The notes under the pieces were generated by a model. That model was not told where the DNA came from, ran no database searches, and saw only the letters and a list, made by a program, of their open reading frames with translations. The position numbers were made by a program, and so were the translations under genes. This document shows, piece by piece, positions 1 through 30,900 of a stretch of 64,000 nucleotides of DNA. Source of the stretch: Phallusia mammillata (taxonomy: Eukaryota). Location: positions 20,522,001-20,586,000 of the forward strand of contig OZ281500.1 in assembly GCA_965637545.1 (NCBI GenBank), given 5' to 3'. Positions within the stretch are counted from its first letter, which is position 1; every line of letters begins with the position of its first letter.

Positions 1-3000
1 GTCAACGCAACTTTTTATGTTGCAAGTTTGTCAATGTCGTAATACAAAATTATTATATTCTCTACTTGAGAAATTGTCAAATAAAGACGAAACCAAAAAT
101 GTGAAACACAAACGGTTCCATTTGTCGAACACCAAATAAACAATAATAAATGTTTTTATGCATTGAAATATGCAATGGTCACAATAAAATGGAATTGCTT
201 GTTTGCAATTTGTGTCAAAAAATAATTATTACCACTCAATAAACGGAGAGTCAAAGTAATTATTCAGCTTCTGATAAAAGCTTAAGTCACAAAATAAAGT
301 ATTTGATTTACCAGCAGGTTATGCTGGCGACGTCATTTAATAAAATTGGTACCTCCCTAATAAGAAGGTAAAGTCAATAGTTGCAAGGTAATGCAACATT
401 GTCAGACACATGATGTGTACAAAACAACTGAATGCGAATCAAATCATATTCGTTGTCAAATTATAAATATTTGCGATTTGGTATTCAAATAACATTCAAA
501 TACCGCGTTGTAGTAACAGAATAAGAACAATTTACAATGTACATGTTGGCAGTCATGGATGAAAAATTTAAGCAGTTTCCAAAACTGGGAGATGATGTGC
601 AGATGCTATCCGCAATGATCTTACTCCTGATGAGCACTTCTTGTCAACATCTTTTCACTCGTCAGCTGCAAAAGAATAAGATTCACGATTAGCAAATAAC
701 TTTAAATCTTTTATATCTTGAACCAACTAATCTTAACGATTTTATTTTATGTTGCTAAAAGTAACTTCTTCTTACCTTTGACTAGAATTGCTGATGTGTA
801 GATTGACACATTCGTCAAAACACAACTGTCGTTGCCGTTTAGTTGACCATGTTTCCATTTAGTTGCAAGTTGCCAACCAGAAACATCAAGTCACTCCCTC
901 CAATCGGGAATGGAGATTTGCTGATTCTGATTCGCTTTTGTGCATTTTGCTTTGTTTCGCTGTTGCTCGCAAGGAACCAATTTTGTCGAATGAATCCCAA
1001 AGCATATGCTACCTGTATATATATGGACTCTACAATGGATGATCGAAACGCTATCTGCAGTCGAACGATGCTTCTCAGAGCTTTCCCACTTGCTGTATAG
1101 ATCTGGAGGTATCGATTACAGCGTTACGAGTGTATTCTGGCGCTGATGATGATGATTATTACAGCTTTGTTGTCAGACCGGGTCCCACACGAAGAGAAAC
1201 AAGCTTCACTGACGGTTTCCACGAAAGACAATGGGACGAAGGTGTAGATTTCATGTTATGTCATGATGGCACGAGACTGTACAAGTGATCACAATTCCCA
1301 AACTATATTTGATCAAAATCTTGTTTTAACAAGATTTTTAAAACACCTACACCAAATTCACAGTGTTAACACGTTGACTCCCGTAGCAAGTTAAACCAAA
1401 CCCAAACCAGCTAACTATTCGCAATCGCATCGTTTACAGCTAACTCATACCACGTCAAAACATAGGCTAATATAAAATTTCGTCTTGTATCGCGCGTTGG
1501 TATGTGAACATGCATTTTCTCGTTATACTTTCATATACACGGTGATAACCTTTTTTTAGATTATTAGTTTAAGCATCTTTTTTATTACAAAGGTTTCTTA
1601 TTATGAGCCTTGACCCCACGCATATATATGTTTTTGAAGCAACAGTTTAGTGGCGTTTCTATAGTTTTCAATGTCAATGAATAGAAATACCAGTCATTTG
1701 TGTATCGATAACTTATGTTTGTGTTTTGCTTATCTGGTAACTTGATCTTTTTTCAGATAGCTCGAGACAATATCAGTTTTGACTTTCAAACGCATAATTT
1801 ATTGCGAAAAAAAAACAAAGGTCAATAAATGAAAAATGAAAATGTCATTTTAATGGTCGCAATACAATCAATGCAATTTAATTTCACCCAATTGGGCAAA
1901 TCAAAGAAATCGTAAACGCAAACGATGCGTCAAAGTCAATTGATGAAATATCGTTCGAAGTCGCATTAGACTTACACGTTGAAATGTTAACATACGAATA
2001 CACTTTGATAAAGCGAGTCAACGCAACTTTTTGTGTTGCAGGTTTGTCAATGTCGCCATACAAAATCATTATATTCTCCACTTGAGAAATTGTCAAATAA
2101 AGACGAAACTAAAAATGCGAAACACAAACAGTTCCACTTGTCGAACACTGAATGAACAACAATAAATACTTTTATGCATTGAAAAATGCAATGGTCACAA
2201 TGAAAAGAAATTGCGTGTTTGCAACTTATGTCACAACATATCGTCACCATTCAATGAGCGGTAATGTCAAAAGTATTACTCAGCTTTTTGATAAAAGTCC
2301 AAGTCAGAAAACAAAAATAATTACCAGCAATTAATGCTGGCGACGTCAGGTCAAAAAATTGTTACCTTCCTAACAAGAGGAATAAGTCAATGTTAAATAG
2401 TTGCAAGTTAATGCAACATTCTCAGCCACACGGTGTGTACAACACAACTCAATGAGAATCAAGTCATATTTGTTGTTAAATTGACAAAATATTTGCGAGT
2501 AAGTATTCAAATAACGTTTGAATACCACGTTGAAGTCACAAAACAAATATGTACACTATGTAGATAACCATGGTTGAGAACACATTTCTCAAAACTTGGA
2601 CGTTGCGTAGATGATGTGCAAATGCTTTCTGCAACGATCTTGCTACTGATGAGCACTTCTTGTCAAAATCATTTCACTCACTTCTGTAAATAAACAAGAT
2701 CAGCGATTAGCAAACAAAATTTTGTTGTTTATGTTGTGGACAAGCCTAATTAACGATTTTATGGTATTGTATACAGTGACATCCCCTTACCTTTGTGCAG
2801 AATTGTTGAGATGTAGATTGACAGCTTTGTAAAAACATAACTGTCGTCGCCGTTTAGTTGATCATGTTTCCATTAAGTTGCAAGTTGCTAACTATAAGCA
2901 TCAAGTCACACCTTCCAATCGGGAATGGAGATTTGCTGATTCGTTTTTCCACATTTTTCTTCTTTTGCTGGTGCTCACAAGGAACCGAACTTGTCGAATG

Positions 3001-3300
3001 AATCCCAAAGCATATGCTACCTGTGTATATAGGCACTCAACAACGGAGGCTCGAAACACGATCTGCAGTCGAACGATGCTTCTCAGAGCTTTCCCACTTG
3101 CTGTATAGGTCTGGAGGTATCCATTACGGCGTTATGATGATAAATGTTGTTTACTTGACGCGTGATGACCCAACAGGCTTTATGAAAAGGGGCCCACGCG
3201 TCCGGGTGCCAGCGATATTTGGCGTTTCCACGACAGACAATGAGGAGCCGGTGTACATTTCGATGTACCTTCGAAGAATAGGCAACCACGCGCAAAGCGT
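1..3300 (-). repeat. ~2-kb repeat family, copies U1 (1-~1330, partial) and U2 (~1331-3300); intron-bearing strand is minus
   Basis: The same blocks recur about 2 kb apart, e.g. gtcaacgcaacttttt at 1 and 2017, cttacctttg at 771 and 2786. They are reverse complements of the copies at 3.9-5.6 kb and 12-19.5 kb. Confidence 0.9.
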
Positions 3301-3337
3301 AGGATTTTTGTCTGCTTATAGTTACCGATGGGTTATT

Positions 3338-3345
3338 TGACGTCA
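3338..3345. promoter_or_regulatory. CRE-like palindrome TGACGTCA in a CpG-rich spacer between inverted repeat copies
   Basis: TGACGTCA at 3338-3345, with further ACGT/CGCG motifs to ~3390. Function is inferred only. Confidence 0.3.
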
Positions 3346-3929
3346 TACTGTTACGCGTGCGACGTACGTGCAGCAAACTTTGACGTCGCATTGAAATTGA
3401 GCTGCTGATTTCAACACTCGTTTGAAAATTTTCCAGGAACAATTTAGCCGTAATAAACACATAAACACAAAATATTAATCTCTTTCAGTAAGTAAATCTT
3501 TTAGTAGATCCTTACTGCATACTTCATAGTATTTTTCTGAAGCTAAAAAATTTTGTTCGTATCAATAGCATTGTAATCTACATATGTTTAAGTTTTAATT
3601 TCAGTCCATGTTAATCCGTTTTCAATATAACTCATGCTTGTTACTCTGCTCTAGTTAACACCACGACAAAGGCCTCTGCAGAAAACGCCATTTGACACCA
3701 GTTTGTCTTGTACGAGTATTTTAAAGCATAATTTGTAAAAAACGTACATTTGCGTTGCAGTAAAATTTGCGACACACGATATCTTTAAATCATAAGACTG
3801 GTAAATTGGACTTGAAATTTTCATTTATGGATTAAACCAGTTTGGCAAATAGGCTAAAACCTCGCTTGTAGTACTGGCTTATTGTGCTACAGTTGTAAAC
3901 GACAATAATTCATCTTGTAAAGGTTGTTA

Positions 3930-5600
3930 CAGTCATAAATAACACGTGTCTCGAATATGATGTCTCGTGCCATCACGACATGACATGAAATCTACACCTT
4001 CGTCCCATTGTCTTTCGTGGAAACCTTCAGTGAAGCTTGTTTCTCTTCGTGTGGGAGCCGGTCTGACAACAAAATTGTAATAATCATCATCAGCGCCAGA
4101 AAACACTCGTAACGCTGTAATCGACACCTCCAGAACTATACAGCAAGTGGGAAAGCTCTGAGACGCATCGTTCGACTGCGGATCCCGTTTCGAACATCCA
4201 TTGTTGAGCCCTATATATACAGGTAGCATATGCTTCTAGATTCATTCAATAAATTTGGTTTCTTGCGAGCAACAGCAAAAAAGGAAAATGGCGGGAATCA
4301 AATCAGCAAAGCTCCATTTCCAATTACAAGGAGTGACTTGATGTTTCTGGTTGGCAACTTGCAACGAGACAGAAACATGATCAACTAAACGGGACGACAG
4401 CTGTGTTTCGACAAAGGTGTCAATCTACACATCAACCATTCTACTGAAAGGTAAGAAAATGTCACTTTAAGTAAAAAATCTTAAATCGTTTACTAAAATG
4501 ATTTAAGATATAAAAGGTTAAATGCATTTTGCTAATCGAGAATCTTATTCTTTTGCAGCTGACGAGTGAAAATATGTTGACAAGAAGTGCTCATCAGGAG
4601 CAAGATCATTGCGGATAGCATCTGCACATCATCTACGCATTGTCCCAGTTTGGGAACTGTACATTTTTTATCCATGACTGTACGGTGTAAATACTATTTT
4701 TGTTATTACAACGCGGTATTCAAACGGTATTTGAATATCAAATCAGAAATATTTTGTAATTTTGACAACGAATGTGACTTGATTCGAACTTATTTGTTAT
4801 GTACACATAATGTGTCTGACAATGTTGCATTTACTTGCAACTATTTAACATTGACTTCTCCCTTTGGTTAGGGAGGTACCAATTGTTTGCCTGACGTCGC
4901 TAACATATACTTACTGGTAATTTACATTATTAATTTGATTGATCTTTTATATAAAAAAAATGACTTGAGCTTTTATAACAAAGCTAAATAGTGTTTTTGA
5001 TTTTCTGCTCATTGAGTGGTGACGATATTTTTGTGATACTTTATTTTGTAACTTAAGCTTTTATTAGAAGCTGAATAATGACTTTGACTCTCCGCTTATT
5101 GAGTGGTGATAATAATTTTGTGACACAAATTGCAACCACGCAATTTACTGTTATTGTGACCATTGCATTTTTCAATGCACAAAAACACTTATAGTTGTTC
5201 GACAAATGGAACCGTTTGTGTTTTGTTTTATTGGGTTTCGTCTTTATTTGACAATTTCTCCGGTGGAGAATATAATAATTTTGTATTAAGACATTGACAA
5301 ACTTGCAACATAAAAAGTTGCGTTGACTTGCTTTACCAAAGTGTATTCGTATGTTAACATTTCAACGTGTAAGTCCAAATTGAGACTTCGAACAATGTTT
5401 TATCGATTGACTTTGGCGCATTGTTTGCGTTTACGATTTGTATGACTTACCCAATTGGGTGCAATCAAATTGCAATTATTGCACTTGTGACGACTGAAAT
5501 GACATTTGCATTTTGCATTTAATGACCGTTGTTTATCGCAATAAATTGTGTGTACAAAAACCAAAACTGACTTTGGCTCAAGCTTTACAAACAAAAAATT
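3930..5600 (+). repeat. ~2-kb repeat family copy U3, inverted relative to U1/U2
   Basis: Reverse complement of the U2 blocks. Intron GTAAG at 4451 to TTGCAG at 4558. Confidence 0.9.
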
Positions 5601-5694
5601 ATAAAATCCCAGACAAGCAAAATGTAACTTAGGATTTGATATACAGTCGAACGATGCTTCTCATGGCTTTCCCACTTGCTGTATAGGTCTAGAG

Positions 5695-5725
5695 CAGGGG
5701 TCACCAAACTACGGCTCGCGGGTCT
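5695..5725 (+). mobile_element. Truncated hAT/Charlie-type MITE end
   Basis: CAGGGGTCACCAAACTACGGCTCGCGGG preceded by GTCTAGAG (Charlie-like target site). It interrupts a short repeat-family fragment. No partner end found. Confidence 0.45.
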
Positions 5726-6803
5726 GACTGCAATACTAGCACGGAAACCTTTTATTTACTTATTTGATTCTCATACTGTCGTATTGAATCATGATATTTC
5801 TTATGAAATTATAAAGTCACCAACGTTCTGCCCAAGGACCACTGCCTAACGTAAAAGAACTTTTTTGATCGATCTAAGTTATATTAGAAAATAAAAGAGT
5901 CTATTGTTGAAGATTTATTTAGGTGCCTATAGTTGCATAGATATTTTAGTTTCGCGCAGAGTACGACTGTTACGAGTGTAAATCCATCACTAAAAATGTT
6001 TGCAAATGTTGACTTAGCCTAACTGCATGACCAGTTTTTATAATGAAATAGTAAAACAAAGATGACATTTTTTGTGCATACTACTAAATAAATAAATCTT
6101 CTCTATCATATTTGTTTTAATGTCTTATAAATTTGCCTTTTTGTTATCCATTTTATTGCAGGCTAACATGAGGCTACGTAAATACACACAAAAGTTATTA
6201 GAGTTGTTGATTTGTCGTCAGTGTTAAGGATTTACACAAGGTCGAAAGCCAGAAAGGACAGCTTGCTCGCTTTTTCCTGGTATATAACAGGCTCCTGAAT
6301 TTTCTTCCATATAGTTCTTCACTCGCCGTTTAAAGTCAAAAGGTATAGACGACCGCATTAGCTCGGGGCTTCTATAACTTCTAGTTGTAATTTTTTTGCG
6401 CACGCGGTAAAGAATTTGTCGACTTTTTTCCATGTTTTCACGTCCGTACTCGTCAACTCGTTTCCATAGAGTTCTGTTAAAGTACTCGTACAGCGCGATG
6501 TCCTGTAAAAGTAAAATCAAGTCAAGTTTGTTTGCATTGTCAGCACTTTGTCCAGTTGTCATTGTTGAACAGCTTCGTAAACAAGCAAGGACAAAAAACC
6601 CATTGGTTATCGAGTAAAGTGTCCTGACTGTGAAAAATTCACCCAGGGTGGTCACAATTTTATGTTAGGTCTGATTTTTCTCATAGCAGTCACAAAAACG
6701 GATTAAAAAGGGGACCGCAAAAAAATACTGCCACAGAGATTTTAGTGAATAATTTCAGTTCTTGATAAGGTGCAGACAGTGCACGTTGTTTTGACCTAAT
6801 CGG

Positions 6804-7113
6804 CAAGGGTCGGCAACCTTTTTGGCGACGCGTGCCAATTTACTTGTTATTTCCAGGTGTTAATGACCTCGCGTGCCAACGTTTTTCTAAATAATTGTGG
6901 CTCGTGCCAGCAGATATCAATAATAAAGAGAAAGCAGAGTGTTTTTTGCATGTAAGGCTGAATTTTAAGACGATGGCACGTTAAAAAGCATAAACAAGCA
7001 GTGTAACAGGGTAAATTGTTACTTCATATGAACACGCAAATCGATTGGCGTGCCATAAAAAAGCACCTCGCGTGCCAACCTTGGCACGCGTGCCAGGGGT
7101 TGCCGACCCCCTG
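6804..7113. mobile_element. hAT-type MITE in the last GAL3ST intron
   Basis: Ends CAAGGGTCGGCAACC...GGTTGCCGACCCCCTG with subterminal TGGCACGCG motifs. TSD not preserved. Confidence 0.7.
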
Positions 7114-8267
7114 GTATAAGGTCTCATCAGTGCAGCAGGTGACGAGAGATGGGCCATATTGGCTAGGGTTTGACGTGCCTGTCGTATCGTACAGCTATTA
7201 ATGTAACAAATGTTTGCCATATTGCTTTATACATACAACTCGGCTAAGATTCGTGAATGTACGTTTGTGCAGTTCGGACGGAAATTCCTTTTTTCGTGCG
7301 TAAGTTCGGCTATTCATCCAAACACAACTGGCTACAATTTCCCATTCCAAACACAAAAGATCCTGGCACACAAAAAGGTTAAAACCCAGCAAAAATAAAT
7401 CGTTTTCTAGAAGTTGCACACCTTTAAAAGTATCAAGGATTCGTCCAGATATTCCAACAGCATCACTAGGTCCATGTTCTGGTCCAGCTCTTCTATTTTT
7501 CTGTCAATCTCTTTTGTATCAATCAACATCGGATCAATTCCCAAATGATGAGATTGAAAATTTTTGAATCTGATAAAAAGGATTCGAAAGCAAAATTTAA
7601 CAGCATACTGCCAGACTTTTCAAAAATGAAAACAGTATAGGCCCAAAAATTGTCCGGATTAGGCAAAGATCTGGATTAACCAATGCCGATTAGTTTAAGC
7701 CTTATCACATTACAAATCATCTGTACCTCAAGTTGTGTCCGAATTACAGATCCGGTTTTACCTAGGTTTATTGTACATGTTAATATGTTGCCTATAGACG
7801 GAATATGAAAACGTTTCCAATCATATGTACACACTTATTAAGCGACTATGTCAATTTCTCCAGAATTTTTTCTAACCAAAAACAGAAAAGAAAACCGACT
7901 TTCCAAGTGAAATTTACCTGAAGTAGAACGGAACCGAGGAATTAAGCAAAGGAGCCGCTTTCATCAAAAACTTATCAACACCTAATTTTGTATCTTGTGT
8001 AATGTAAGTTTTGGGCATTTCTTCACAAAAGGTTTTCCTTTCTCTCCGGTTTGATAAAAATTGTAGGCTGACTGAAAATTCGTCCATGGTTTGCGTATGA
8101 CTGTGAAGTATCTGAACATACGAGAAATAGTTTTTACATATAACCTACATCACGGTAAATTAGTAAGGGGTGCCATTTGAAAAAATATATTTTAAAATAA
8201 TGTCGCCGATTGTAAAAATATGCGTTTATAGCAGAACAGGAATGCAAGTACCATTCCGATTTAAGGA

Positions 8268-8698
8268 ATCAATCAATCAATCAATCAATCAATATAGGTG
8301 TCGTGTCAGAGTCTGACGTCGGCGACAATCAAATGTCATAATTGTATACAAGGGGCATTGTTCGGCGGTGGGAGCCCCAGTCCCTTCCGCCGGAGCTTTT
8401 ATCAAGGCTTGCTTTTCTAGATCCGCTCAGATCCCCTACCGAGGTAGGTGCAGAGTTTTCCTCATCCTAGCCTTCGCCTGACGAGGCATAACCTACAAGG
8501 CAGTGGGTGGTTTGAAATCAGAGTTTTCCTTCTCCTATCTCATGTGCTGGCTATGCTAAGAGTCATGAGCAACCCTTCACTCCATTGGAGACCAGAACTG
8601 CCAGTAGGGACATATCCGGAGCCACAAGGCCCTTGCTGGGGATAGGTACTGTCTCTCAGTGGAACGACGGATGCAGTTTAACGTCATACCCAAGACAC
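8268..8698 (-). mobile_element. GC-rich non-LTR-derived (SINE/RTE-like) insertion with (GATT)n tail
   Basis: GC-rich island in a GAL3ST intron. The minus strand ends in (ATTG)n at ~8268-8293. Motifs GGGTATGACGTTAAACTGCATCC and AGGAGAAGGAAAACTCTG resemble RTE-type ends as recalled, not searched. Confidence 0.45.
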
Positions 8699-9172
8699 TT
8701 TGTTTAAGCAATATCAGAGCGAAAATGTCATGTTTATTCCGAATTGGCAAAATCAAAATGAAAATAGCGTTTTCGCTCCGATAAAGCTAAATCAGAAGGA
8801 CAGCATTTACAGACACAATCAATCATATCATACTTGGTGTCGGGATGGAAGCATTTTTTCATCTCCTCAGCATCGAACCTCGAATGATCCACCACAATAT
8901 TAGCATTCTTTGGAAGCATAAATTCACATTTAAAGCGTCCAGGATACCCACCAACGAACCAGCACGGAAACATGGCGGCACAAAGCTGTAAACATTATTT
9001 GTATTCAACCACAGTTGAGTACCAACACAAGATATCACAACAGAAATGTTTGCTAAATGCCGATAGAAATAGCGCAGGTACTTAAATTAACGATAAAACT
9101 GGGTTAGGGTTAGGAACTAATTTTAATGTTAAGAACTAACGAGTTTATAGAGCTCTTCTGGCAAATGTATTT

Positions 9173-9224
9173 TTATTCCGACGTTTCGACGTACTATACA
9201 GGTCGCCTTCATCAGGGTAAATAA
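9173..9224 (-). ncRNA. Minimal type-I hammerhead ribozyme, Penelope-like
   Basis: Minus strand: ttatttacc-CTGATGA-A-GGCG(loop)CGTC-GAAACGTC-ggaataa. Core intact, 4-bp stem II, palindromic stem III, imperfect stem I. Confidence 0.55.
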
Positions 9225-10679
9225 CACTGAATGCGCGTAGCACAGTGCACGGTAAACAAAGGAAAAAACAAATGGTGTCACAACGCAACGAAAACACTGC
9301 GCGATAACGAATGATTTAATCTTTGAGCAGGTGCCTGTAGCACGTTAATTTTTTAGGAACTAACTTTTAGGTTAATTTTATTGTTGTTATTATTATGAAA
9401 CCTCATCTCAAACGTAATAATCCTAACCGTCAGCATTTTTGCACAAATAGCATTCAAAATATTTTGGAATGCTCTTTGCTTCAGCTAACGGTATTTATCA
9501 AACTTGTGCGGTGTGAGTTCTTGTGTTAGTAGATTTTCTCTTTAGTTGGGTTACCGGTTACTTACAAATTGTCCCTTTTCTTAAATTTAAAACGAAATAA
9601 ATGATGCCATAGGAGTACGGTATAAATTCAATCTCCGAAAATCAAGAAACATGAGCTTTAACACTAACCTTGTCGAAACGATGTTGCTTAATGTAATGAA
9701 GTAAAATAGTTTGCACCGTTGTTGAACCAGTTTTGTGGGTTTTAATGAACACGAATTTCGAAACAGGTTTGCACTGATTCTCTTTAAACTGGGACAAATT
9801 ACTTGTTGTTTGATTTCCATCAAATGTCGTTGGTGTTTGTTGTGTTGGCCAAAAAACAAAATGAACCTCATTTTTAAATACTTAGTTTACTCTAAAGAGT
9901 ATAGAGCGACCCAAAGTACAATAACTTGTCTTGTTGAAACAAAGCACAAAATGTCTGCAAGACTTAACCTGTTAGTCCCCATCATGGCTTACGGCGCATG
10001 ACCTATTCGTTATGGAAGCTAGTAGCCTATATGCCGTGTACTAACTTACTGGTAAAAAATGGAGAAATCTTTACCTTCCAACTTACTCCAGTTGCGTCTC
10101 GGACTTTTGCTGTTGATGTGTTGGATCTGTGGTTATAGAAACTGCTGATTGTTTGAAAGGTCGGTATGTTAGCAAACACTAGGAAAGTTAGTGTGACAGA
10201 GATGCACAGAATAAAACATTTCTTCGTTTTTGAAATCATTTTATCGAGACAGACTGTGAACAAATTTAAACTTTGATCCAAGCTGTTTCTAACACTGGAA
10301 AAAAATAAAACAAAATTACTCACAGCACAAACACATTGTCAACCGCCTTTTACCTTTGGACTTCTTTTCGTTTCAGAATTTGACTTACTTGTTCTTTTTC
10401 TGTCAAGGTAAGTAGTAATTAGCTTTTTTGCCGCGAAGTGTTTTTTAACACCCTAGAACTACAAATGTGGACGGTTTTAGTGCATCAGTGACTATACTTC
10501 ATTTTGTATTAAACCGACAGCAGGTATGATGCTGTAGCAAAAATGTCTGTCAACTAAGAAGGTTGAGAAACACTGAACGAACAGAATCTATAAATCTAAC
10601 TAACTTTCCACGTATGTGCCTTGACAAAATCAAATACAGTTCAAACACACAAAGAATTGGGCATTGTATTACTTGTATT

Positions 10680-11570
10680 CGCGCTATTATCTTGCGTAGA
10701 AACCGTCAGTGAAGCTTGTGTCTCTTGGTGTGGAACCCGGTTTGACAACAAATTTGTAACAGTCACCATCAGCGCCAGAAAACTCTCGTAACGCCGTAAT
10801 CGATACCTCCAGATATATACAGCAAAACAGCAAAACAAAGAAAAATGAGGAGAAGTCGAATTGGAATCAGCAAATCCCTATTCCCGATTGGAAGGAATAA
10901 CTTTATGTTTCCTGGTTGGAAACTTCAACGAAATAGAAACATAATTAAAATTAAATTAAACAACTAAACTGCAATGAAAACGCTCGTAATGCGGTAATCG
11001 ATACCTCCAGTGGTGGGATTCTGCCGGTTCGCAACGGTTCTATAGAACCTTCTCACAAAATTTTATGAGATCAGCGAACCGGTTAGCATTACTGGTTACT
11101 GTCAATGGACTTTTTGTAACAGAACCGGCTGAAAAATATGACTTTTGTGAGAGAATCAGCTGACAAAAAAATGAATCCTACCACTGGTTACTTCCAGACC
11201 TATACAGCAAGTGGGGAAGCTCTGAGAAGCATCCCTCGACTGCAGATTGCGTTTCGACCATCTATTGTTGATTTTCTATATATGCCGGTAGCATACGCTT
11301 CGAGATTCATTCGTGAAGTTTCTTCCTTGTGAGCAACAGCAAAAAAGCAATATGTTGGGAAGAAAAGCAGCAAATCTCCATTCCCGCTTCAAAGTAGTGA
11401 CTTGATGTTTTCTGGTTGATTTTATGTGACGACATTGACAAACTTGCAACGTACAAAGTTGCGTTGACTTGATTTATCAAAGTGTATTCGTATGTTAACA
11501 TTTTAAGTCCATATTGAGACTTCGAACGATGTTTTATTAATTGACTTTGGCGCATCGTTTGGGTACCGCT
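10680..11570 (+). repeat. Fragmented repeat-family copy U4, internally deleted and MITE-interrupted
   Basis: Contains gaaaccgtcagtgaagctt, cagacctatacagcaagtggg and gacattgacaaacttgcaac blocks with deletions between them. Confidence 0.8.
11008..11186. mobile_element. hAT MITE, 179 bp
   Basis: TIR CAGTGGTGGGATTC...GAATCCTACCACTG. Decayed 8-bp TSD gatacctc/gttacttc. Same family as 23275-23453. Confidence 0.85.
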
Positions 11571-11779
11571 TTAACACCATACCTCACGGGAGATCCACTT
11601 TCACAAGGTGGCGTAAAGAGCTAAATTATTTATTTAGCGGCTAAAGAGGACTTAAAGGTTTTTAAATTTTTACATCAGTAACTAAGTTCTATTGCTAGTT
11701 GTATACCTTATATACCTTACCCGACCCTTATAGCCCTAACCGTAAGCATTTTTAGAGAGATATCGTTTTAAATATGAAA

Positions 11780-14700
11780 AGTGCTCTTTGTATTTTGCAT
11801 TTAATGACCGTTGTTTATCGCAATAAATTGTGTGTACAAAAACCAACTGACTTTGTCTCTAGGTTTACAAACAAAATTCCAGACAAACAAAACATACGTT
11901 ATAAGTGAGGATTTGGTTTGAAAGTTAATCCACACAAAACGACTAGTATTGGGATAACACAAGCATATTTAGTGTTGCAACTGTAATCATTTGCACTGTG
12001 TCGTGCTTTCGTGGCACAACACGAAATTTACACCTTTATCCCATTGTCTGTCGTGGAAACGCCAAACATCACTGGCACCCGCACGCGTGGGCCCCTTTTC
12101 ATAAAGCCTATTGGGTCATCGTGCGTCAAATAAACAACTTCTATTTATCATAACGCTGTAATCAACACCTCGAGACCTATACAGCAAGTGGGAAAGCTCA
12201 GAGAAGCATCATTCGACTGCAGATCGCGTTTCGAGCATCCATTGTTGAGTCCCTCTATATAAAGGTGGCATATGCTTCGAAATTCATTCGGCAAATTTGG
12301 TTCCTTGCGAGCAACAGCAAAAAGCAAAATGGCGGGAATCAAATCAGCAAAGCTCCATTCCCGATTGGAAGGAGTGACTTGATGTTTCTAGTTAGCAACT
12401 GGCAACTAAATGGAAACATGATCAACCCAACGGCGACGGCAGTTGTCTTTTAACAAAGGTGTCAATCTATACATCAACAATTCTACTCAAAGGTAAGAAG
12501 ATGTCACTTTAAGCAATATCAAATTAAACCATAAACTAATCTGGTTAACGATGTAAAAGATTAAAATGCAGTCTTCTAATCACGAGTCCTATTCATTTGC
12601 AGACGTGAGTGAAAAGATGTTGACTAGAAGTGCTCATCAGGAGTAACACCATTGCGGACAGCATCTGCACATCATCTACGCAATGTCCCAGTTTGGGAAC
12701 TGTACATGGTTTCCCACAATATTTATATATTGTAAATATAAGTTTTGTTACTACAACGCGGTATTCAAATGTTATTCGAATACCAAATCGCAAATACTTT
12801 ATAATTTTGACAATGAATATGACTTGATTTATTTGTTATGTACGCGCAATGTGGCTGACAATGTTGTATTAACTTGCAACTATTTAAAATTGACTTCTCC
12901 CTTTTGTTAGGAAGGATATATTTTTTTGACCTGACGTCGCCAGCATTAATTGCTGGTAATTATTTTTATTTTCTGACTTCAGCATTTATCGAAAAAGCTG
13001 AATAATGACTTTGACTTTCCGCTCATTGAGTGGTGACGATAATTTTGTGACATAAATTGCAAACAAGCAATTTACTTTTATTGTGACAGTTGCATTTTTT
13101 AATGCATAAAAACATTAATTGCTGTTTATTTGGTGTTTGACAAATGGAACCGTTTGTGTTTCGCATTTTTAGTTTCGTCTTCATTTGACAAATTCTCCAG
13201 TGGAGAAGATAATGCTTTTGTATTACGACAATGTCAAACTTGCATAACAAAAAGTTGCATGGGCTTAGTTTGACAATTTGTATTAATACCTCAATATTTT
13301 GACGTGTAAGTCTAATTCGACTTTTAATAATATTATCACTTGACATTAGCGCATCGTTTGCGTTTACGATTTCCATGACTTACCCAAATGGGTGAAATTA
13401 AATTGCATTTATTGTATTGTGACGATTGAAATAACATATTTATTTTTGTGTTTATTGACCGTTGTTTTTTCGCAATAAAATATTCGTTTGAAAGACAAAA
13501 CTGATATTGTCTCGAGCTATCTAAAAAAAGATGAAATTACCAGATAAGAAAAACACAAACATAATAAGTTATCGATACACAAATGACTGGTATTTCTATT
13601 CAGTGAAAATGCAACCTATAGAAACGCCACAAAACTATTGCCTTAGAAACATATACATGCGTAGGGTCAAGACTAACATAATGAAAAAAACATTCTTAAC
13701 TTAATGATCTAAATCTAAAAGAATGTTATTGCCATGTGTATGAAGGCATAACTAGAAAATGCATGTTTGCGTACCAACGCGCGATACAAGACGGAATTTT
13801 TAATTAGCCTATGATTTGACGCGGTGTGAGTTAGCTGTAAACGATGCGATTACGAATAATTAGCTGGTTTGGGTTTGGTTTAATTTGCTACGGGAGTCAA
13901 GATGTTAACACTGTGAAATTTATGTAGGTGTTTTTAAAATATTTTCGATAACAAACATATTTAGTGTTGCAATTGTGATCACTTGTACAGTCTCGTGCCA
14001 TCACGACATAACATGAAATCTACACCTTCGTCCCATTGTCTTTCGTGGAAACCGCCAGTGAAGCTTGTTTCTCTTCGTGTGGGAGCCGGTTTGACAACAA
14101 AATTGTAATAATCATCATCAGCGCCAGAAAACACTCGTAACGCTGTAATCGGCACCTCCAGACCTATACAGCAAGTGGGAAAGCTCTGAGAAGCACCGTC
14201 GACTGCAGATCGCGTTTCGATGACAACGTGTGGAGCCCCTATATATACATGTAGCATATGCTTCGGGATTCATTCGACAAAATTGGTTCCTTGCGAGCAA
14301 CAGCGAAAAAAAGAAAAATGCTGAGAATCGAAACAGAATCAGCAAATCTCTATTCCCGATTGGAAGGAGTGACTTGATGCTTCTGGTTAGCAACTGCAAT
14401 TAAATGGAAACATGATCAACTAAACGGCGACGACAGTTGTGTTTTGACAAAGGTGTCAATCTATACATCAACAATTCTACTCAAAGGTAAGAAGATGTCA
14501 CTTTAAGCAATACAAAATTAAAGCATAAACTAATCTGGTTAACAACGTTAAAGAATAAAATGCAGTTTTCTAATCGCGAGTTTTATTCATTTGCAGACGT
14601 GAGTGAAATGATGTTGACAAGAAGTGCTCATCAGGAGTAACACCATTGCGGATAGAATCTGCACATCATCACAGCAATGTCCCAGTTTGGGAACTGTACA

Positions 14701-17700
14701 TGGTTTCCCACATAAGTTATATATTGTAAATACTATTTTTTTTATTACAACGCGGTATTCAAATGTTATTCGAATACCAAATCGCAAATACTTTATAATT
14801 TTGACAATGAATATGACTTGATTTATTTGTTATGTACGCGCAATGTGCCTGACAATGTTGTATTAACTTGCAACTATTTAACATTGACTTCTCCCTCTTG
14901 TTAGGAAGGTAATATTTTTTTGACCTGACGTCGCCAGCATTAATTGCTGGTAATTATTTTTATTTTCTGACTTCAGCATTTATCGATAAAGCTGAATAAT
15001 GACTTTGACTTTCCGCTCATTGAGTGGTGACGATAATTTTGTGACACAAATTGCAAACAAGCAATTTACTTTTATTGTGACAGTTGCATTTTTCATTGAA
15101 CGAAAACATTTATTGTTGTTTATTTGGTGTTCGACAAGCGGAACCGTTTGTGTTTCGCATTTTTAGTTTCGTCTTCATTTGACAAATTCTCCAGTGGAGA
15201 AGATAATGCTCGTGTATTACGACAATGTCAAACTTGCATAACAAAAAGTTGCATGGGCTTAGTTTGACAATTTGTATTCATACCTCAATATTTTGACGTG
15301 TAAGTCTAATTTGACTTTGAATCATATTATTAACTGACTTTAACGCATCGTTTGCGTTTACGATTTCTTTGACTTACCCAATTGGGTGCAATTAAATTGC
15401 ATTGATTGTATTGCGACGATTGAAATGACATTTGCATTTTTTATTTATTGACCATTGCTTTTTGCAATAAAATATTCGTTTGAAAGACAAAACTGATATT
15501 GTCTCGAGCTATTTGAAAAAAGATGAAATTACCAAATAAGCAAAACACAAACATAAGTTATCGATTCACAAATGACTGGTATTTCTATTTAGTGAAAATG
15601 GAAACTACAGAAACGCCACTAAACTATTACCATGAAAACATACAGATCCGTGGGTTCAAGGCTAATATAATGGAAAAAAGATGCTTAACTTAATGATCTT
15701 AAAAAATGTTATCACGGTGTCTATAAAAGTATATCTAGAAAATACATGTACCCATACCAAAGCAAGATACAAATGAAATTTTAAATCAGTCTACGATTTG
15801 ACTCATGTATGTTGGTTGGAAACAGCATGTCGGCAAATAACTCCGTCGTCGACGTGTGGTTCAGTTCGCTACCTTCACAAAAATGATAACATCATCAAAA
15901 TTATATAGCCGTTTTCAAAATATTTCCATGACACAAACATGTTTAGTGAATTGCAATTATGATTACTTGTACAGTCTCGTGCCATCATGGCATAACATGA
16001 AATCTACACCTTCGTACCATTGTCTTTCGTGGAAACCGTCAGTGAAACTTGTTTCTCTTCGTGTGGGACCCGGTCTGACAACAAAATTGTAATAATAATC
16101 ATCATCAGCGCCAGAAAACACTCGTAACGCTGTAATCGATATCTCCAGACCTATACAGCAAGTGGGAAAGCTCAGAGAAGCATCGTTCAACTGCAGATAG
16201 CGTTTCGGGCCTCTATTGTGGAGCACCTATATATACAGGTAGCATATGCTTCGGGATTCATTCGACAAATTTGGTTCCTTGCCAGCAACAGCGAAAAAAA
16301 GAAAAATGCTGAGAATCGAAACAGAATCAGCAAATCTCTATTCCCGATTGGAAGGAGTGACTTGATGCTTCTGGTTGGTAACTTGCAACTAAATGGAAAC
16401 ATGATCAACTAAACGGCGACGACAGTTGTGTTTTGACAAAGGTGTCAATCTATACATCAACAATTCTACTCAAAGGTAAGAAGATGTCACTTTAGGCAAT
16501 ACAAAATTAAACCATACACTAATCTGGTTAACAATTTAAAGAATAAAATGCAGTTTTCTAATCGCGAGTCTTATTCATTTGCAGACGTGAGTGAAATGAT
16601 GTTGACTAGAAGTGCTCATCAGGAGTAACACCATTGCGGACAGCATCTGCACATCATCACAGCAATGTCCCAGTTTGGGAACTGTACATGTTTCGTGCAT
16701 GGTTTCCCACAAAAGTTATATATTGTAAATACTATTTTTTTTTATTACAACGCGGTATTCAAATGTTATTCGAATACCAAATCGCAAATACTTTATAATT
16801 TTGACAACGAATATGGCTTGATATATTTGTTATGTGCACGCAATGTGTCTGACAATGTTGTATTAACTTGCAACTATTTAACATTGACTTCTCCCTCTTG
16901 TTAGGAAGGTAATATTTTTTTGACCTGACGTCACCAGCATTAATTGCTGGTAATTATTTTTATTTTCTGACTTCAGCATTTATCGAAAATGCTGAATAAT
17001 GACTTTGACTTTCCGCTCATTGAGTGGTGACGATATTTTTGTGACATAAATTGCAAACAAGCAATTTACTTTTATTGTGACCATTGCATTTTTTAATGCA
17101 TGAATACATTAATTGCTGTTTATTTGGTGTTTGACAAATGGAACCGTTTGTGTTTCGCATTTTTAAATTTGCTTTCATTTGACAAATTCTCCAGTGGAGA
17201 AGATAATGCTTTTGTATTACGACAATGTCAAACTTGCATAACAAAAAGTTGCATTGATTTAGTTTGACAATTTGTATTAATACCTCAATATTTTGACGTG
17301 CAAGTCTAATTTGACTTTGAATCATATTATTAACTGACTTTAACGCATCGTTTGCGTTTACGATTTCTATGACTTACCTAATTGGGTTAATTTAAATTGC
17401 ATTTATTGTATTGTGACGATTGAAATGACATTTGCATTTTTCGTTTATTGCCCATTGCTTTTTGCAATAAAATATTCGTTTGAAAGTCAAAACTGATATT
17501 GTCTCGAGCTATTTGAAAAAAGATGAAATTACCAGATAAGCAAAACACAAACATAAGTTGTCGATACACAAATGACTGGTATTTCTATTCAGTAAAAATG
17601 CAAACTAAAGAAACGCCACTAAACTATTGCCCTAAAACATATATATGCTTGGGTCAGGACTAACATAATGGGAAAAAAGATGCTTAACTTAATGATCTTA

Positions 17701-19470
17701 AAAAATGTTATCACGGTGTCTATAAAAGTATAATTAGAAAATACATGTACCCATACCAAAGCAAGATACAAATGAAATTTTAAATCAGTCTACGATTTGA
17801 CTCATGTATGTTGGTTGGAAACAGCATGTCGGCAAATAACTCTGTTCAGTTCGCTACCTTCACAAAAATGATAACATCATCAAAATTATGTAGCCGTTTT
17901 CAAAATATTTCCATGACACAAACATGTTTAGTAAATTGCAATTATGATCACTTGTACAGTCTCGTGCCATCATGGCATAACATGAAATCTACACCTTCGT
18001 CCCATTGTCTTTCGTGGAAACCGTCAGTGAAGCTTGTTTCTCTTCGTGTGGGACCCGATCTGGCAACAAAACTGTAATAATCATCATCATCAGCGCCAGA
18101 AAACACTCGTAACGCTGTAATCGATACCTCCAGACCTATACAGCAAGTGGGAAAGCTCTGAGAAGCATCTTTCGACTGCATATCTCGTTTCGAACATACA
18201 TTGTGGAGCACCTATATATACAGGAAGCATATGCTTCGGGATTCATTCGACAAATTTGGTTCCTTGCGAGCAACAGCGAAAAAAAGAAAAATGAGGAGAA
18301 TCGAAACAGAATCAGCAAATCTCCATTCCCGATTGGAAGAAGTGACTTGATGTTTCTGGTTGGCAACTTGCAACGAGACAGAAACATGATCAACTAACCG
18401 GGACGACAGTTGTGTTTTGATAAAGCTGTCAATCTATATTCAACAATTCTACTCAAAGGTAAGAAGATGTCACTTTAAGCAATATCGTGAAATCGTTTAC
18501 TGAGGTTCTTAACAACGCAAAATATTAAAATGCATGCAGTTTGCTAATCGCGAATCTTATTCATTTGTAGATGTGAGTGAAATGAAGTTGACAAGAAGTG
18601 CTTATCAGGAGTGACACCATTGCGGATAATATCTGAGCAACATCTAAGCAATGATTTTTGGGAACTGTGTTCTCAACTATAGGGTTTCCCACAGTGTACA
18701 TATTTCTTTTGTTACTGGAACGTGGTATTCGAATACCTAATCGCAAATATTTTATAATTTTGACAACGAATATGATTTGATTCGCATTTAGTTGTTACAT
18801 ACACATAATGTGTCTGACAATGTTGCATTAACTCGCAACTATTGACTTTGACTGCTTGTTAGGGAGGTAACAATTTTATTAAATGACGTCGCCAGCATAA
18901 CTTGCTGGTAATACAAGTTTTTTTTATTTTTTATTTCGTGACTTGAGCTTTTATCAGAAGCTGAATAATTACTTTGACTTTCCGCTCATTGAGTGGTGAC
19001 GATATTTTTGTGACACAAATTGCAAACAAGCAATTTACTTTTATTGTGACCATTGCATTTTTCAATGCCTGAAAGCATTTATTGTTGTTTATTTGGTGTT
19101 CGACAAGTGAAACCGTTTGTGTTTCGCATTTTACTTCGGCTGACTTTCGACTATTTCTCCAGTGGAGAATGCTTTTGTATTACGACGATGTCCAACTGGC
19201 AACACAAAATTTGCGTTGACTTGCTTTATCAAAGTGTATTCGTATGTTAACATTTCAACGTGTAAGTCCATATTGAGACTTTAAACAATGTTTTATCAAT
19301 TGACTTTACGCATCATTTGCGTTTACGATTTCTATGACTTACCCAATTGGGTGAAATTAAATTGCATTTATTGTAACTTACTTGTGACGATATAAAATGA
19401 TATTTGCATTTTTCATGCAATAACTGTGGCCGTTTCCAAATAAATATTGTTTGAAAATCGCATTTAGTGT
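11780..19470 (+). repeat. Head-to-tail array of repeat-family copies U5-U8, period ~1987 bp
   Basis: cttgtacagtctcgtgcc recurs at ~13982, ~15966 and ~17952. ctcaaagGTAAG recurs at 12493, 14487, 16476 and 18459. Confidence 0.92.
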
Positions 19471-22220: not shown

Positions 22221-23138
22221 ATGGTTTACTTGGAATTAGCAAGTTTGGTGGTCAATGGTGTTTTCGGAATTTTTGCGACATACATGCTTATCAGCCTGGG
22301 ATATTTCCAAATCAGAAGCTTTAAGGAAAACCCGTTTGGACAAGGCGATGTGACCATTCGAAACGGACACTTGCTCCGTATATTCTGCATCGCAGGAACG
22401 TTTTTTGCTTGTCTGCATTTTTGGACGGTATTTATCCGACATTTTGTTGCTGACAGTGACAACACATGCTACGCCTTTGGAATTTTGTGGCTTCTTACTT
22501 ATGCTCTGGGCATTATGTGCAGCTATATTTTCCTATGGTTTCGACAGTATGTCATCAACAACAACCCAAAGATGCCTTATCTGCGGAACAAAAAGGTCAC
22601 CGTGCTCAGTTACTTAACCCTCGTCTTTCTGATTATCGGAGCTGTGATGATCTTTCTCGCTGGTTCGCGGCTGATATTTTTCTCACAATGTTCACAAAAC
22701 CCTGACCAGGCTAGACAAAAGCTGTACACGATAATACTATCCGGGATTTTGCTTTCTATTACAGTGATTGGCCAGCTCCAATTGCTTGTCCTGTTTATCA
22801 TGCCAATTATAAAGAGCAGACAGCAAGTGGGACAAAGCGTGGTCTCGGAGTCGGGGACCAGTCCAATGGACATAGTGCATCGGTGTATAGCTGCAGCAGT
22901 TATTTGCACCTTCAGTGATGTGGCAGCGGCTGTAGTGACTATTGTCATTGAGAGCTCGGTGGGTCAGCTTATCTACGATCTGAATCTGTTTGTCAACATA
23001 ATCTGCTGTCTTGCAAGCTTCAAAAACTGGCAAAAGCTATTGAATCCTTTCGAGTATCGCCGCTTGCTGGCTAGAATTGCGATGCAGGGAGATTCCAATA
23101 CACATATGTCAACGGAGGTTACCACAACTGGACAATAG
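22221..23138 (+). CDS. Intronless orphan 7TM (GPCR-like) protein, 305 aa
   Basis: ATG-to-TAG ORF with about 7 hydrophobic segments. Motifs YIFLWFRQ, LFIMP, RC..C..SD and YDLNLFVN..C..SF.NW..LLNP match, from memory, a family expanded in ascidians. Confidence 0.8.
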   Translation: MVYLELASLVVNGVFGIFATYMLISLGYFQIRSFKENPFGQGDVTIRNGHLLRIFCIAGTFFACLHFWTVFIRHFVADSDNTCYAFGILWLLTYALGIMCSYIFLWFRQYVINNNPKMPYLRNKKVTVLSYLTLVFLIIGAVMIFLAGSRLIFFSQCSQNPDQARQKLYTIILSGILLSITVIGQLQLLVLFIMPIIKSRQQVGQSVVSESGTSPMDIVHRCIAAAVICTFSDVAAAVVTIVIESSVGQLIYDLNLFVNIICCLASFKNWQKLLNPFEYRRLLARIAMQGDSNTHMSTEVTTTGQ

Positions 23139-23274
23139 AACTATGTACATAAATTTTGTCAAAAAGTTGTCCTTGTGCGTTTGCTTGTTGTGCTGTTGTC
23201 TTTATGGTGTTGGGGCTTAAACTTTTTGTCTATAACCTTTCTGTAGTAAACGAACCAATTATATACCTAATCAC

Positions 23275-23453
23275 CAGTGGTGGGATTCAATTTTGTGTGA
23301 GTCGGTTCTATCACAACAGTCATATTTTTCAACCCGTTTGTCGATAGTAAATCCATTGACAGTAACCAGTAATGCTAACCGGTTCGCTGATCTCATAAAA
23401 TTTCGTGAGACGGTTCTATAGAACCGATGAGAACCGGTTGAATCCAACCACTA
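23275..23453. mobile_element. hAT MITE, inverted relative to the 11008 copy
   Basis: TIR CAGTGGTGGGATTC...GAATCCAACCACTA. 8-bp TSD ctaatcac/cttatcac. Confidence 0.85.
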
Positions 23454-27926: not shown

Positions 27927-30900
27927 ATGAATTTCAAAGGCTTTGGTTCTGCTGCAACAAGCAATTCTGGTTCTACAGGTTTTACATTTGGGTAAGCTCT
28001 ATACTTTTATCATTTTTGTTTTAGAACAAAAAAATTGAGTTTTTTTGTATTTTTTGTAGAAAGACTCCAGCCACCACTGCGACAGGATTTGGCCAACAAA
28101 CTGGCACTACTGGTTCAACTGGATTTACATTTGGGTAAATACAAATAATGGTACCAGGAAAAGAAATAGGGTGACACTAAAACGCTGAATGGGCGGGAGC
28201 GGGACGTCGCGGAACCGCTAAATATCGGGTAAATTGCTGATGGTTAGTGCTATTAGGGTTGGGTTGGGGTTTTATAATAGTACACAAATAAAAAAATGTC
28301 CCTGCCTAAAACTTATTCAGCTGTTTCTTGACATTCAGCAAAAACGCTTGGGCGGGAAGACTCCCTCGGCCGCTGAACGTTTCCCTCGGTCGCGGAAGGT
28401 ATCCGGGCAAAAAAAATTATTTTTAATGATTTTATATTATAAAACCTTATCCCAACCTTAATAGCACTAACCGTCAGCAATTTAACCCGATATTCAGCGG
28501 TTTTCACGTCGCCCCGCCATCTCCTGCCCGTCCCGCCCATTCAGCGTTTTAGTGTCACCCAAAGAAATATGCCAGACTTGTTGGTTTAAGTTTTCATGTA
28601 CTCTAGTTTTTTTTGTATGAAAGATAGAATTAAGATGACCCTTCATCCACTCTACCTTTCTGGTAGGCAAAAACTGTTGGCATATTTCTTGAATTGCTGT
28701 GATAAACAATGATCATTTTTTGACTCATAAAGCTATCTATTGTTAAGACACTGAGGCAGTTTAACAGTTTCTGAAATGCTCATATCCAAGATCTGTTTTA
28801 GTTCTACAGCAACCACAACAAGCAGCACAGGATTTTCACTTGGAGGAGCTGCCAGCACATCTGCAGGAACAGGTTTTTCATTTCCAACCAAAGGATCGAC
28901 AACAGGTACCTCTAAAAATTGTGCAGAGAAATGACTGAAACAAAACATTTAGAATTATGGCAAGGTATCGCAGTCTGTTTGAATGAAATACATATTGTTT
29001 TTGTCCGTATTTTTTTTTTCTTTTTTCCCGTCTAACGCGGATTTGGTCAAGAAAGAATGGTTCAAACTTTTTCAAATTTACACACATTACAGATATTGAT
29101 CTAAAGTTGGTCCATGTGAATTTTGACCCCGTTTGACCCCTAAGTTCACCCACAGCCCCCCAAAACGTGCAATTTTTAGCGCAGATTTGTTCCCACGTTT
29201 TGGTCAAGAAAAAATGGTTCAAACTTTTTCAAATTTACACACATTATAGTTGTTGGTCTAAAGATGGTCCATGTGAATTTTGACCCCGTTTGATCCCTCG
29301 GTTCACCCACAGCCCCCCAAAACGTGAAATTTTTGAAACGGCTATACTTGCTAAAGCAGATGATTCTGGAGTTTCATACTTTTTTGATTGGTACATTGCA
29401 GCGTATTTTAAAGTATTTTGTAACTTGAAGTTGTATATATCCATTTTCACCCCCTTACCCCCAAATGTTTGTTTGTTTGTTCACATGTTAATAAGGTCAG
29501 AAATACAAACTTAACCTGCTGAAATTTTAAACAGCTGTGGATAGGGTACTCCTTATCGGCTGTTAAAAATTTCAGTGCAATCGGCTCAGTAATAGTAAAA
29601 ATATGTTTTTACATGCTGTCTTTTGTCAAATTTGTGCTCGCTCTGTGCACAGCTGATGCAATGGGAGTGATTGACGATAGTCGCGCATGGAAAAAATGCC
29701 TCTGCTTCACGCATGAATGCAGTCGCCACTTGACCATTTTCTCACTGGTTTGAATTAACATGTTACGATGTTAGTGATATTGCGCTGTAAACGTTAACGC
29801 TGCGGGGTCACGGCAGGGACAGGCGATGTGTATGACATCATGACTGTCTTGGCCTGTCGCTCAGTGCACAGCTGACGCAATGGGAGTGATTGACGATAGT
29901 GACGCATGGAAAAAATGCCTCTGCTTCATGCATGAACGCAGTCGTCACTTGACCATTTCTTATTGGTATTAAGATGTTACGATGTTAGTTATATTGCGCT
30001 GTAAACGTTAATCTAGGTCAACTTTTTCGTGTTTCGAAACGCAGAGCGACAACGCCTCACTATTTGTTACACCTGTGTAACCTAACTTCTCAAACTGAAA
30101 GCGTTAATAAAATTGTTTCAGAACAGGTTTTGGACATAAAAAGCCCAGCTAAGCAATCATATTGATGGTATGTAGAAACTTAACGGCGCCAGGGAACGCT
30201 ATGTGTGGATTAAAAATCATAATTCAACCAACTCAACCAAAGCCAATTCAACCAATTCAACCAAAGGGCTGTGACTGTTACAAAACAAAAGTTTATAAAT
30301 ATTTCTTAAATACGTCAAATTTCATCTGTGCAATTCAAATTCTTACCTAGCATATGCATGCGCCATTCATCCTGTTACGAACTCAAAATATATGTGGGTG
30401 TGGGGACCCATTGGTTTTTGCTAGCAAAAACAATTATGTTATAACAGGCCACAAAGTATTGGTACCATACTGAATGTATCCATCAAATATATATCCCTTA
30501 CAATTATAACAAATGGTGCGTAAATATGGCACAGTTTCTGTAAAATGGAATATATAGGAAAATCACTATTCCAGTTTAACAATGATTGTGCCCTATTTTT
30601 ACTGTTACCAAATCGCATGTGCACATGTGTGGGGACCCATTAGATTATGCTTGCAGAAACAATTATGGTATAAAGTGCCAGGAAAAAGATAGGGACCCAA
30701 TGAAATGTAGGTGCCAAATATATATCCATTATAAATATAGTAAATCAATATGTGATACATCGTTAAATATGATGTAGTATATATAAACTGGCAATATATA
30801 GGAAAACCACTATTCTAGTTTAAACTAGTAGCTGTTGTCTTTACTCCTTGCCACTTTATTTCTAAAAAAAACTCCCATTGACATCATTTCTCTTCAAAAG

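Follow-up and report, generated by a model that had tools for sequence, protein, structure and literature searches.

The 64-kb window analysed here (positions 20,522,001 to 20,586,000 of the forward strand of contig OZ281500.1, Phallusia mammillata assembly GCA_965637545.1; position 1 is its first letter and negative positions lie upstream) is AT-rich, with ~36% G+C, and eukaryotic in character, and its contig is labelled C7 in the 240-Mb genome. It contains an array of a ~2-kb unit that is present in at least nine adjoining copies in tandem and inverted orientation, seven in the window and two in the DNA upstream of it, and each of these nine carries a candidate GT-AG intron. On the minus strand lie M1 (1-1330, truncated by the window start) and M2 (1331-3330), and on the plus strand P1 (3930-5640, with its 3' end cut), P2 (11940-13940), P3 (13941-15925), P4 (15926-17910) and P5 (17911-19460), with which the array ends. 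Two partial minus-strand copies, M0 (-658 to -1398) and Mm1 (-3198 to -3745), were added from the 10 kb of DNA that precedes the window (L001).

The whole genome was searched with the unit and, separately, with its best-conserved 78 nt (the promoter block), which gave 16 whole-unit and 11 promoter-block matches, all inside C7:20518255-20541456, a span of ~23 kb. Because the family is restricted to this one locus, it represents a local array, and a dispersed mobile element or satellite was ruled out. Broken pieces of the unit also occur within the array: plus-strand fragments with parts of the promoter block and exon 1 at 10678-11564, none of which extends to the intron, and a solo minus-strand fragment of the upstream conserved block at 5638-5694. 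The broken unit is interrupted by a ~180-nt element (11009-11188) with an 85%-identical inverted copy 12 kb away (23273-23452), probably a small non-autonomous mobile element.

The sequence-only reading of this DNA had placed a short intron in each of seven complete copies. Both strands of the window were searched with the pattern GTAAG-N50-80-CTAAY-N14-26-YAG, which matched exactly seven times and reproduced all seven sets of coordinates and strands. The intron occupies 666-775 in M1 (minus strand, 110 nt, with an AAAG|GTAAG donor, CTAAT and a GCAG acceptor) and 2684-2790 in M2 (minus, 107 nt, with a GTAAG donor, CTAAT and an ACAG acceptor). On the plus strand it is found at 4451-4558 in P1 (108 nt), 12493-12602 in P2 (110 nt), 14487-14596 in P3 (110 nt), 16476-16584 in P4 (109 nt) and 18459-18570 in P5 (112 nt, GTAG acceptor). 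The minus-strand introns of M0 (L001 8789-8680, 110 nt) and Mm1 (L001 6449-6332, 118 nt) both combine AG|GTAAG, CTAAC, a pyrimidine-rich tail and CAG. With these two, the association of donor, CTAAT-like motif and YAG acceptor, described earlier for seven of seven complete copies, extends to nine of nine. Intron length across the nine ranges from 107 to 118 nt. The donor is invariably AG|GTAAG, seven contiguous positions complementary to the U1 consensus (AG|GTRAGT); the branch-site motif is CTAAT in seven copies and CTAAC in two, and the branch-type adenosine precedes the acceptor by 23 nt in all copies but Mm1, where the distance is 20 nt. The stretch from branch to acceptor is 62-68% pyrimidines, and the acceptor is CAG in eight copies and TAG in one. 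A previously described 1-nt difference just downstream of the acceptor is likewise real, as M1 and P1 differ there from the other seven.

Shuffled sequence gave 1.94 pattern matches per window, or ~0.06 per 2-kb unit, and a single ancestral occurrence could be due to chance with a probability of roughly 6%. Since the seven copies share descent, their 7/7 count alone proves little, and the evidence for the intron is differential conservation rather than copy number. In the nine-copy alignment, 10 of the 11 columns that make up the splice signals (GTAAG, CTAA and AG) are invariant, against 14 of 115 in the remainder of the intron (Fisher P = 1e-7). Among the seven in-window copies the intron interior has a substitution divergence of 0.287, compared with 0.115 for exon 1 and 0.150 for the first 120 nt of exon 2; when all nine copies are included, the interior reaches 0.429, exon 1 0.147 and the start of exon 2 0.198. 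Both comparisons uphold what had earlier been judged by eye, namely that the intron interior diverges faster than its flanks. M0 and Mm1, the two oldest or outlying copies, were also compared with the other seven. Their intron interiors are 0.36-0.40 identical, about the level of unrelated AT-rich sequence, and the final 29 nt of the intron 0.61-0.77. Exon 1 has an identity of 0.78-0.84 and the opening 125 nt of exon 2 one of 0.71-0.72, and the value rises to 0.93-0.94 for a block lying 30-95 nt before the TATA box. Between copy groups, intron interiors differ by 0.22-0.37. At the sequence level, the features of a U2-type GT-AG intron are thus present: the donor, the branch site with pyrimidine tract and YAG, and signals that are better conserved than the interior.

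Upstream of the intron, a TATATATAC-like TATA box precedes an initiator-like TCATTC in all nine copies, at a spacing of 31 nt in seven of them (range 28-33). TCATTC fits six of the seven positions of the initiator consensus YYANWYY, and the start site predicted from it gives a first exon of 207-218 nt. Promoter and exon 1 together occupy 776-1032 in M1 (minus; TATA at ~1023, initiator A at 991, exon 1 at 991-776, 216 nt) and 2791-3042 in M2 (minus; TATA box, initiator A at 2999, exon 1 at 2999-2791, 209 nt). The plus-strand equivalents are 4212-4450 in P1 (TATA 4212, initiator A 4244, exon 1 4244-4450, 207 nt), 12254-12492 in P2 (TATA 12254, initiator A 12286, exon 1 12286-12492), 14240-14486 in P3 (TATA 14240, initiator A 14272, exon 1 14272-14486), 16228-16475 in P4 (TATA 16228, initiator A 16260, exon 1 16260-16475) and 18213-18458 in P5 (TATA 18213, initiator A 18245, exon 1 18245-18458). 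The best-conserved part of the unit is a block of ~57-78 nt located 30-95 nt upstream of the TATA box (14150-14215 in P3), with ~5% divergence overall and 93-95% identity even in the oldest copies; its 11 occurrences in the genome all lie at the array locus. We presume that it is a promoter-proximal element. Neither tRNA-like A/B boxes in this block nor a promoter of the small nuclear RNA type was found.

Downstream of the acceptor, the first AATAAA is found at an aligned position 870-980 nt away, which predicts a mature RNA of ~1.1-1.2 kb. Exon 2 of M1 (1-665, minus) leaves the window, with its AATAAA at -216 (L001 9784); its plus strand is rich in GTCA, that is, in sense TGAC. In M2, exon 2 (1780-2683, minus; AATAAA at 1803-1798) has 18 sense TGAC and 2 antisense. 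The plus-strand second exons are those of P1 (4559-5565, AATAAA 5540; 22 TGAC and 0 GTCA), P2 (12603-13498, AATAAA 13474; 21 and 1), P3 (14597-15490, AATAAA 15466), P4 (16585-17490, AATAAA 17466; TGAC-rich) and P5 (18571-19465, AATAAA 19439; 17 and 0). An 87-nt internal tandem duplication (4963-5123) is present in the TGAC-rich exon 2 of P1 alone.

This enrichment defines a 3' domain. In all seven copies tested, exon 2 holds 13-22 sense TGAC against 0-2 GTCA. The domain of P3 (14801-15490) contains 20 TGAC and 1 GTCA; dinucleotide shuffles of it gave 5.4 +/- 2.0 TGAC with a maximum of 13 in 1000, and outside the array no 690-nt stretch of the window has more than 9. Among 4-mers, TGAC shows the strongest over-representation (z = 11); its density falls at AATAAA, and none occurs in the intron. 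TGAC sites are intact at a frequency of 0.68-0.72, compared with ~0.50 for average 4-mers (P 0.005-0.02). Once past its first ~130 nt, exon 2 of M0 and Mm1 can be aligned only weakly, if at all, to the main family, and the two do not align to each other; each of these 3' exons nevertheless carries 13-14 sense TGAC, mostly as UUUUGAC, versus 1-2 antisense within ~725 nt, and the run in M0 stops at AATAAA. Motif density and strand have therefore been kept where the sequence has not. The strand bias tracks the GT-AG strand in both plus- and minus-strand copies, so the polarity of TGAC fixes the strand of the unit independently of the intron, a feature that had gone unmentioned in the earlier description.

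Exon 2 of P3 also contains short perfect or near-perfect palindromes with 5-7-bp arms, several of them ATTGC/GCAAT, interspersed with TGAC (14933-14951, 15013-15027, 15050-15065, 15186-15200, 15341-15357, 15377-15388, 15392-15404 and 15453-15467). RNA hairpins in exon 2 were considered and rejected: the TGAC domain folds only slightly better than its shuffles on either strand (z = -2.2 sense, -1.7 antisense), and no compensatory changes were seen in the three palindromic stems inspected. TGAC is not preferentially unpaired in the predicted folds.

The coding capacity of the unit was checked exon by exon. No frame stays open on either side of the junction: no more than 50 codons run across it, and none extends to the 5' end. 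The exons have 1-2-nt indels, and no 180-nt interval of the unit shows codon periodicity in its substitutions. The closed frames and the absent periodicity rule out sense-strand protein coding. An antisense open reading frame (ORF) of 87-98 amino acids, open in five copies, was rejected as well, as its substitutions fall 15/25/18 at codon positions 1/2/3 and stops interrupt it in three copies; it has no Pfam match and no relative by word search. The unit has no match in Pfam on either strand; among known RNA families, Rfam gave a single sub-threshold chance match (E = 0.74), and ARAGORN found 0 tRNA genes. Given that no part of the unit is less conserved than the intron interior, a role of the intron as host of a small RNA was rejected; Rfam places no small RNA in it.

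Three small ORFs were nonetheless followed through the copies. Small ORF 1, in exon 1, has 17-19 codons and ends in ...SANL[HY]SRLEGVT, and its start and stop are kept in nine of nine copies; its ATG has an A at position -3, and 5 of 10 substitutions in its conserved tail fall at third positions. A second ORF of 15 codons starts at a TGATG that overlaps the stop of the first (14374-14378 in P3). This stop/start overlap, an arrangement that occurs in termination-reinitiation systems, is retained in all nine copies; P3 carries a frameshift in the ORF itself, and in P2 the ORF reads through. The third, of 9-14 codons at the start of exon 2, again keeps start and stop in 9/9. In the first and third ORFs the only indels are of 6 nt and 3 nt, compared with 1-2 nt for those in the rest of exon 1 and of early exon 2. 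Translation of these ORFs is possible but unsupported.

The copies do not share a simple history. P2, P3 and P4 form one recent group, and trees built from different segments are discordant, with copies grouping differently by segment. This discordance indicates that gene conversion, recombination or a mosaic history has shaped the array, and the copies are therefore not independent samples. Two unrelated versions of a stretch ~100-190 nt upstream of the TATA box are found among the copies, one shared by M2, P2 and partly Mm1 (3140-3260, 12060-12140) and the other by the remaining copies (14060-14140 in P3, with equivalents elsewhere), which points to a replaced segment and again to mosaicism.

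Only two public sequencing runs contain the stretch. Both are DNA-like, covering exons, intron and spacers alike in every bin, and neither holds joints at the intron borders. Contigs from these two runs link different copies within 13400-19399, skipping 1968 and 4034 nt and returning by ~1960-1975 and 3963 nt; the links reflect either variation in copy number among individuals or paths that connect paralogues in the assembly graph.

Two paralogous galactose-3-O-sulfotransferase genes lie in or beside the array, at 6224-10323 (minus) and at L001 ~600-5100 (plus), with Pfam PF06990 on two exons. Each stands tail-to-tail with a repeat unit, and this paired arrangement gives the region the appearance of a segmental duplication inverted about an axis near 3500. 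Located 2.7 kb downstream of the last unit, an intronless ORF of 305 amino acids (22221-23138, plus) is predicted to encode several hydrophobic helices; its only Pfam match is sub-threshold (DUF5389, 18.8 bits), and the exact sequence has no match in the protein collection. Two unrelated tandem repeats lie at 39733-40065 (75-nt unit, 4.4 copies) and 29042-29334 (157-nt unit, 1.9 copies). There is also one exon-level match to glycoside hydrolase family 6, which among animals is, to our knowledge, known only from tunicate cellulose synthase.

We favour the reading, with a probability of about 60%, that the array consists of a lineage-restricted, TATA-driven, locally amplified non-coding gene with a real U2-type intron and a UGAC-repeat 3' domain. 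From this anatomy we infer transcription, splicing, polyadenylation and a role for the motif as follows. RNA polymerase II would start transcription from the TATA box 31 nt upstream of the initiator-like TCATTC, giving a first exon of 207-218 nt that ends in AAG|GTAAG. The U2-type intron of 107-118 nt would be spliced out via the CTAAY branch site 20-23 nt upstream of YAG, and a second exon of ~900 nt would end at the conserved AATAAA, yielding a mature RNA of ~1.1-1.2 kb. Its working part may be the 3' 650-700 nt rich in sense UGAC, mostly UUUGAC, which could serve, for example, as a platform for an RNA-binding factor with many sites. Selection would retain splicing, presumably for expression, export or stability of the RNA. 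A more specific proposal, which we advance tentatively and consider possible at most, is that the array encodes spliced non-coding RNAs acting through this domain as a multivalent platform or decoy for a UUUGAC-binding factor, with selection on motif number and strand rather than on sequence and with dosage set by tandem amplification. A literature search on UGAC-binding proteins and on tandem non-coding genes in sea squirts gave nothing usable.

Several points weigh against the favoured reading. The splice-signal positions used in the conservation test were chosen after the pattern had been noticed, and the comparison covers paralogues of one genome. Among the in-window copies, the remaining unit, including the part downstream of the poly(A) signal, is conserved at about the level of the exons (0.10-0.20), and, with the segment trees discordant, the likeness between exons could in part be due to gene conversion rather than selection. 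Among public runs labelled as this species, twelve that are probably RNA, from four studies, contain almost none of the sampled words, and two of these (X3 and X8) gave zero contigs, with tissues and stages unknown and no control gene. No stable transcript was thus found in the public runs listed, which, given the unknown tissues and stages, is not proof of absence; the missing RNA support weakens expression of the unit but does not refute it. The sequence-only reading had named two observations that would refute it only in combination, equal divergence of intron and flanks and a lack of spliced reads: the former was not found, and the latter was, if only weakly. Its suggestion of spliced transcripts accordingly stands in part, favoured by the kept signals, the drifting interior and the non-coding setting, with no spliced contig or read to accompany them.

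The silence of all listed public runs would also be expected if the array were dead, that is, if a gene once expressed and spliced had fallen silent in all copies and its signals persisted by descent and gene conversion. The mosaic, conversion-like similarity among copies, the broken fragments and inserted element at 10678-11564, and the loss of one small ORF in P3 and P2 fit such decay. However, a conversion tract would homogenise the 110-nt interior along with its borders, yet interiors differ, to near randomness in M0 and Mm1, with the signals preserved in every one of the nine; and TGAC density, kept in 3' exons that have diverged past alignment, needs continuing selection or a very biased mutation process. 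We therefore regard a dead array as rather unlikely. That the unit was never a gene, but a set of repeated DNA-level elements such as binding sites and palindromes, with the apparent intron a variable spacer whose borders resemble splice sites by coincidence, we consider unlikely. The low but real chance expectation of the splice pattern per unit leaves room for it, as do the conservation of the whole in-window unit beyond the exons, the many short perfect palindromes in the 3' part and the lack of RNA; TGAC is, moreover, a half-site for several families of DNA-binding proteins. Such a spacer, though, demands that four features coincide on one strand: a strong 7-bp U1-complementary donor precisely where the variable stretch begins, a branch motif with pyrimidine-rich tail and YAG where it ends, a TATA/initiator pair with the right spacing upstream, and a conserved AATAAA further down. 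The 20:1 bias of TGAC further follows the strand of the unit in plus and minus copies alike, and DNA half-sites need no such bias.

Were the unit instead a micropeptide gene, with a real spliced transcript, tiny peptides made from the small ORFs and an intron between cistrons, the intron would still be real. The starts and stops of small ORF 1 and the exon-2 ORF, kept in all copies with only 6-nt and 3-nt indels, the share of third-position changes in the tail of the former and the context of its ATG are what such a gene would leave. Against this, the peptides vary freely in their N-terminal halves, two copies have a disrupted 15-codon ORF, codon periodicity is absent throughout the unit, and the peptides are mutually unrelated and lack known relatives, with numbers too small for a real test; we hold this to be very improbable.

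The non-coding gene that we favour has partial counterparts among known systems. Long non-coding RNAs (lncRNAs) built on a repeated short protein-binding motif include NORAD, with its Pumilio sites, and the fission-yeast meiRNA, with UNAAAC sites for Mmi1. The array unit is similarly non-coding, is predicted to yield an RNA that is made by RNA polymerase II, polyadenylated and in part spliced, and preserves motif density over sequence; it differs in that UGAC/UUUGAC fits no documented binding site that we found and in its amplification to at least nine local copies. With host-gene arrays of small nucleolar RNAs and microRNAs it shares the duplication of promoter, exons and intron as one unit, lineage restriction and the lack of an ORF. 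The introns of such host genes, however, hold the conserved product while exons drift, whereas here the intron interior evolves fastest and only its splice signals are kept. The insect gene tarsal-less/polished rice (tal/pri) offers a likeness in its seemingly non-coding ~1.2-kb RNA with several kept ORFs, which in our unit have 9-19 codons and in-frame indels; tal/pri peptides share a motif and are conserved at the amino-acid level, unlike those of the unit, which are unrelated, partly broken and without codon-level signal. Clusters of UUCAC/UGCAC, finally, characterise the localisation elements of vegetal maternal RNAs in frogs. The unit resembles these in carrying a 4-6-nt motif in one orientation at irregular spacings of ~20-40 nt over several hundred nucleotides near the 3' end, but its motif differs and there is no sign of maternal expression; the probable RNA runs are nearly devoid of the sequence. 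The literature search returned no localisation-motif data for sea squirts.

Together, our results place the locus with two known classes, lineage-specific non-coding gene arrays and motif-repeat lncRNAs, its expression being unproven. Lineage-restricted non-coding RNA genes are hard to separate from junk, and here nine paralogues in one genome give the comparative test that is usually supplied by orthologues from other species. In that comparison the conserved parts of the unit emerge as a promoter, the signals of one intron and a strand-specific motif domain. If no transcript exists in any tissue, splice-like signals and promoter-like geometry would be maintainable in untranscribed DNA. If transcripts do exist, the array would be a compact model for the retention of introns in non-coding RNAs and for the turnover of motif-repeat domains, and the short TGAC/UGAC motif would provide a direct bait for the binding partner.

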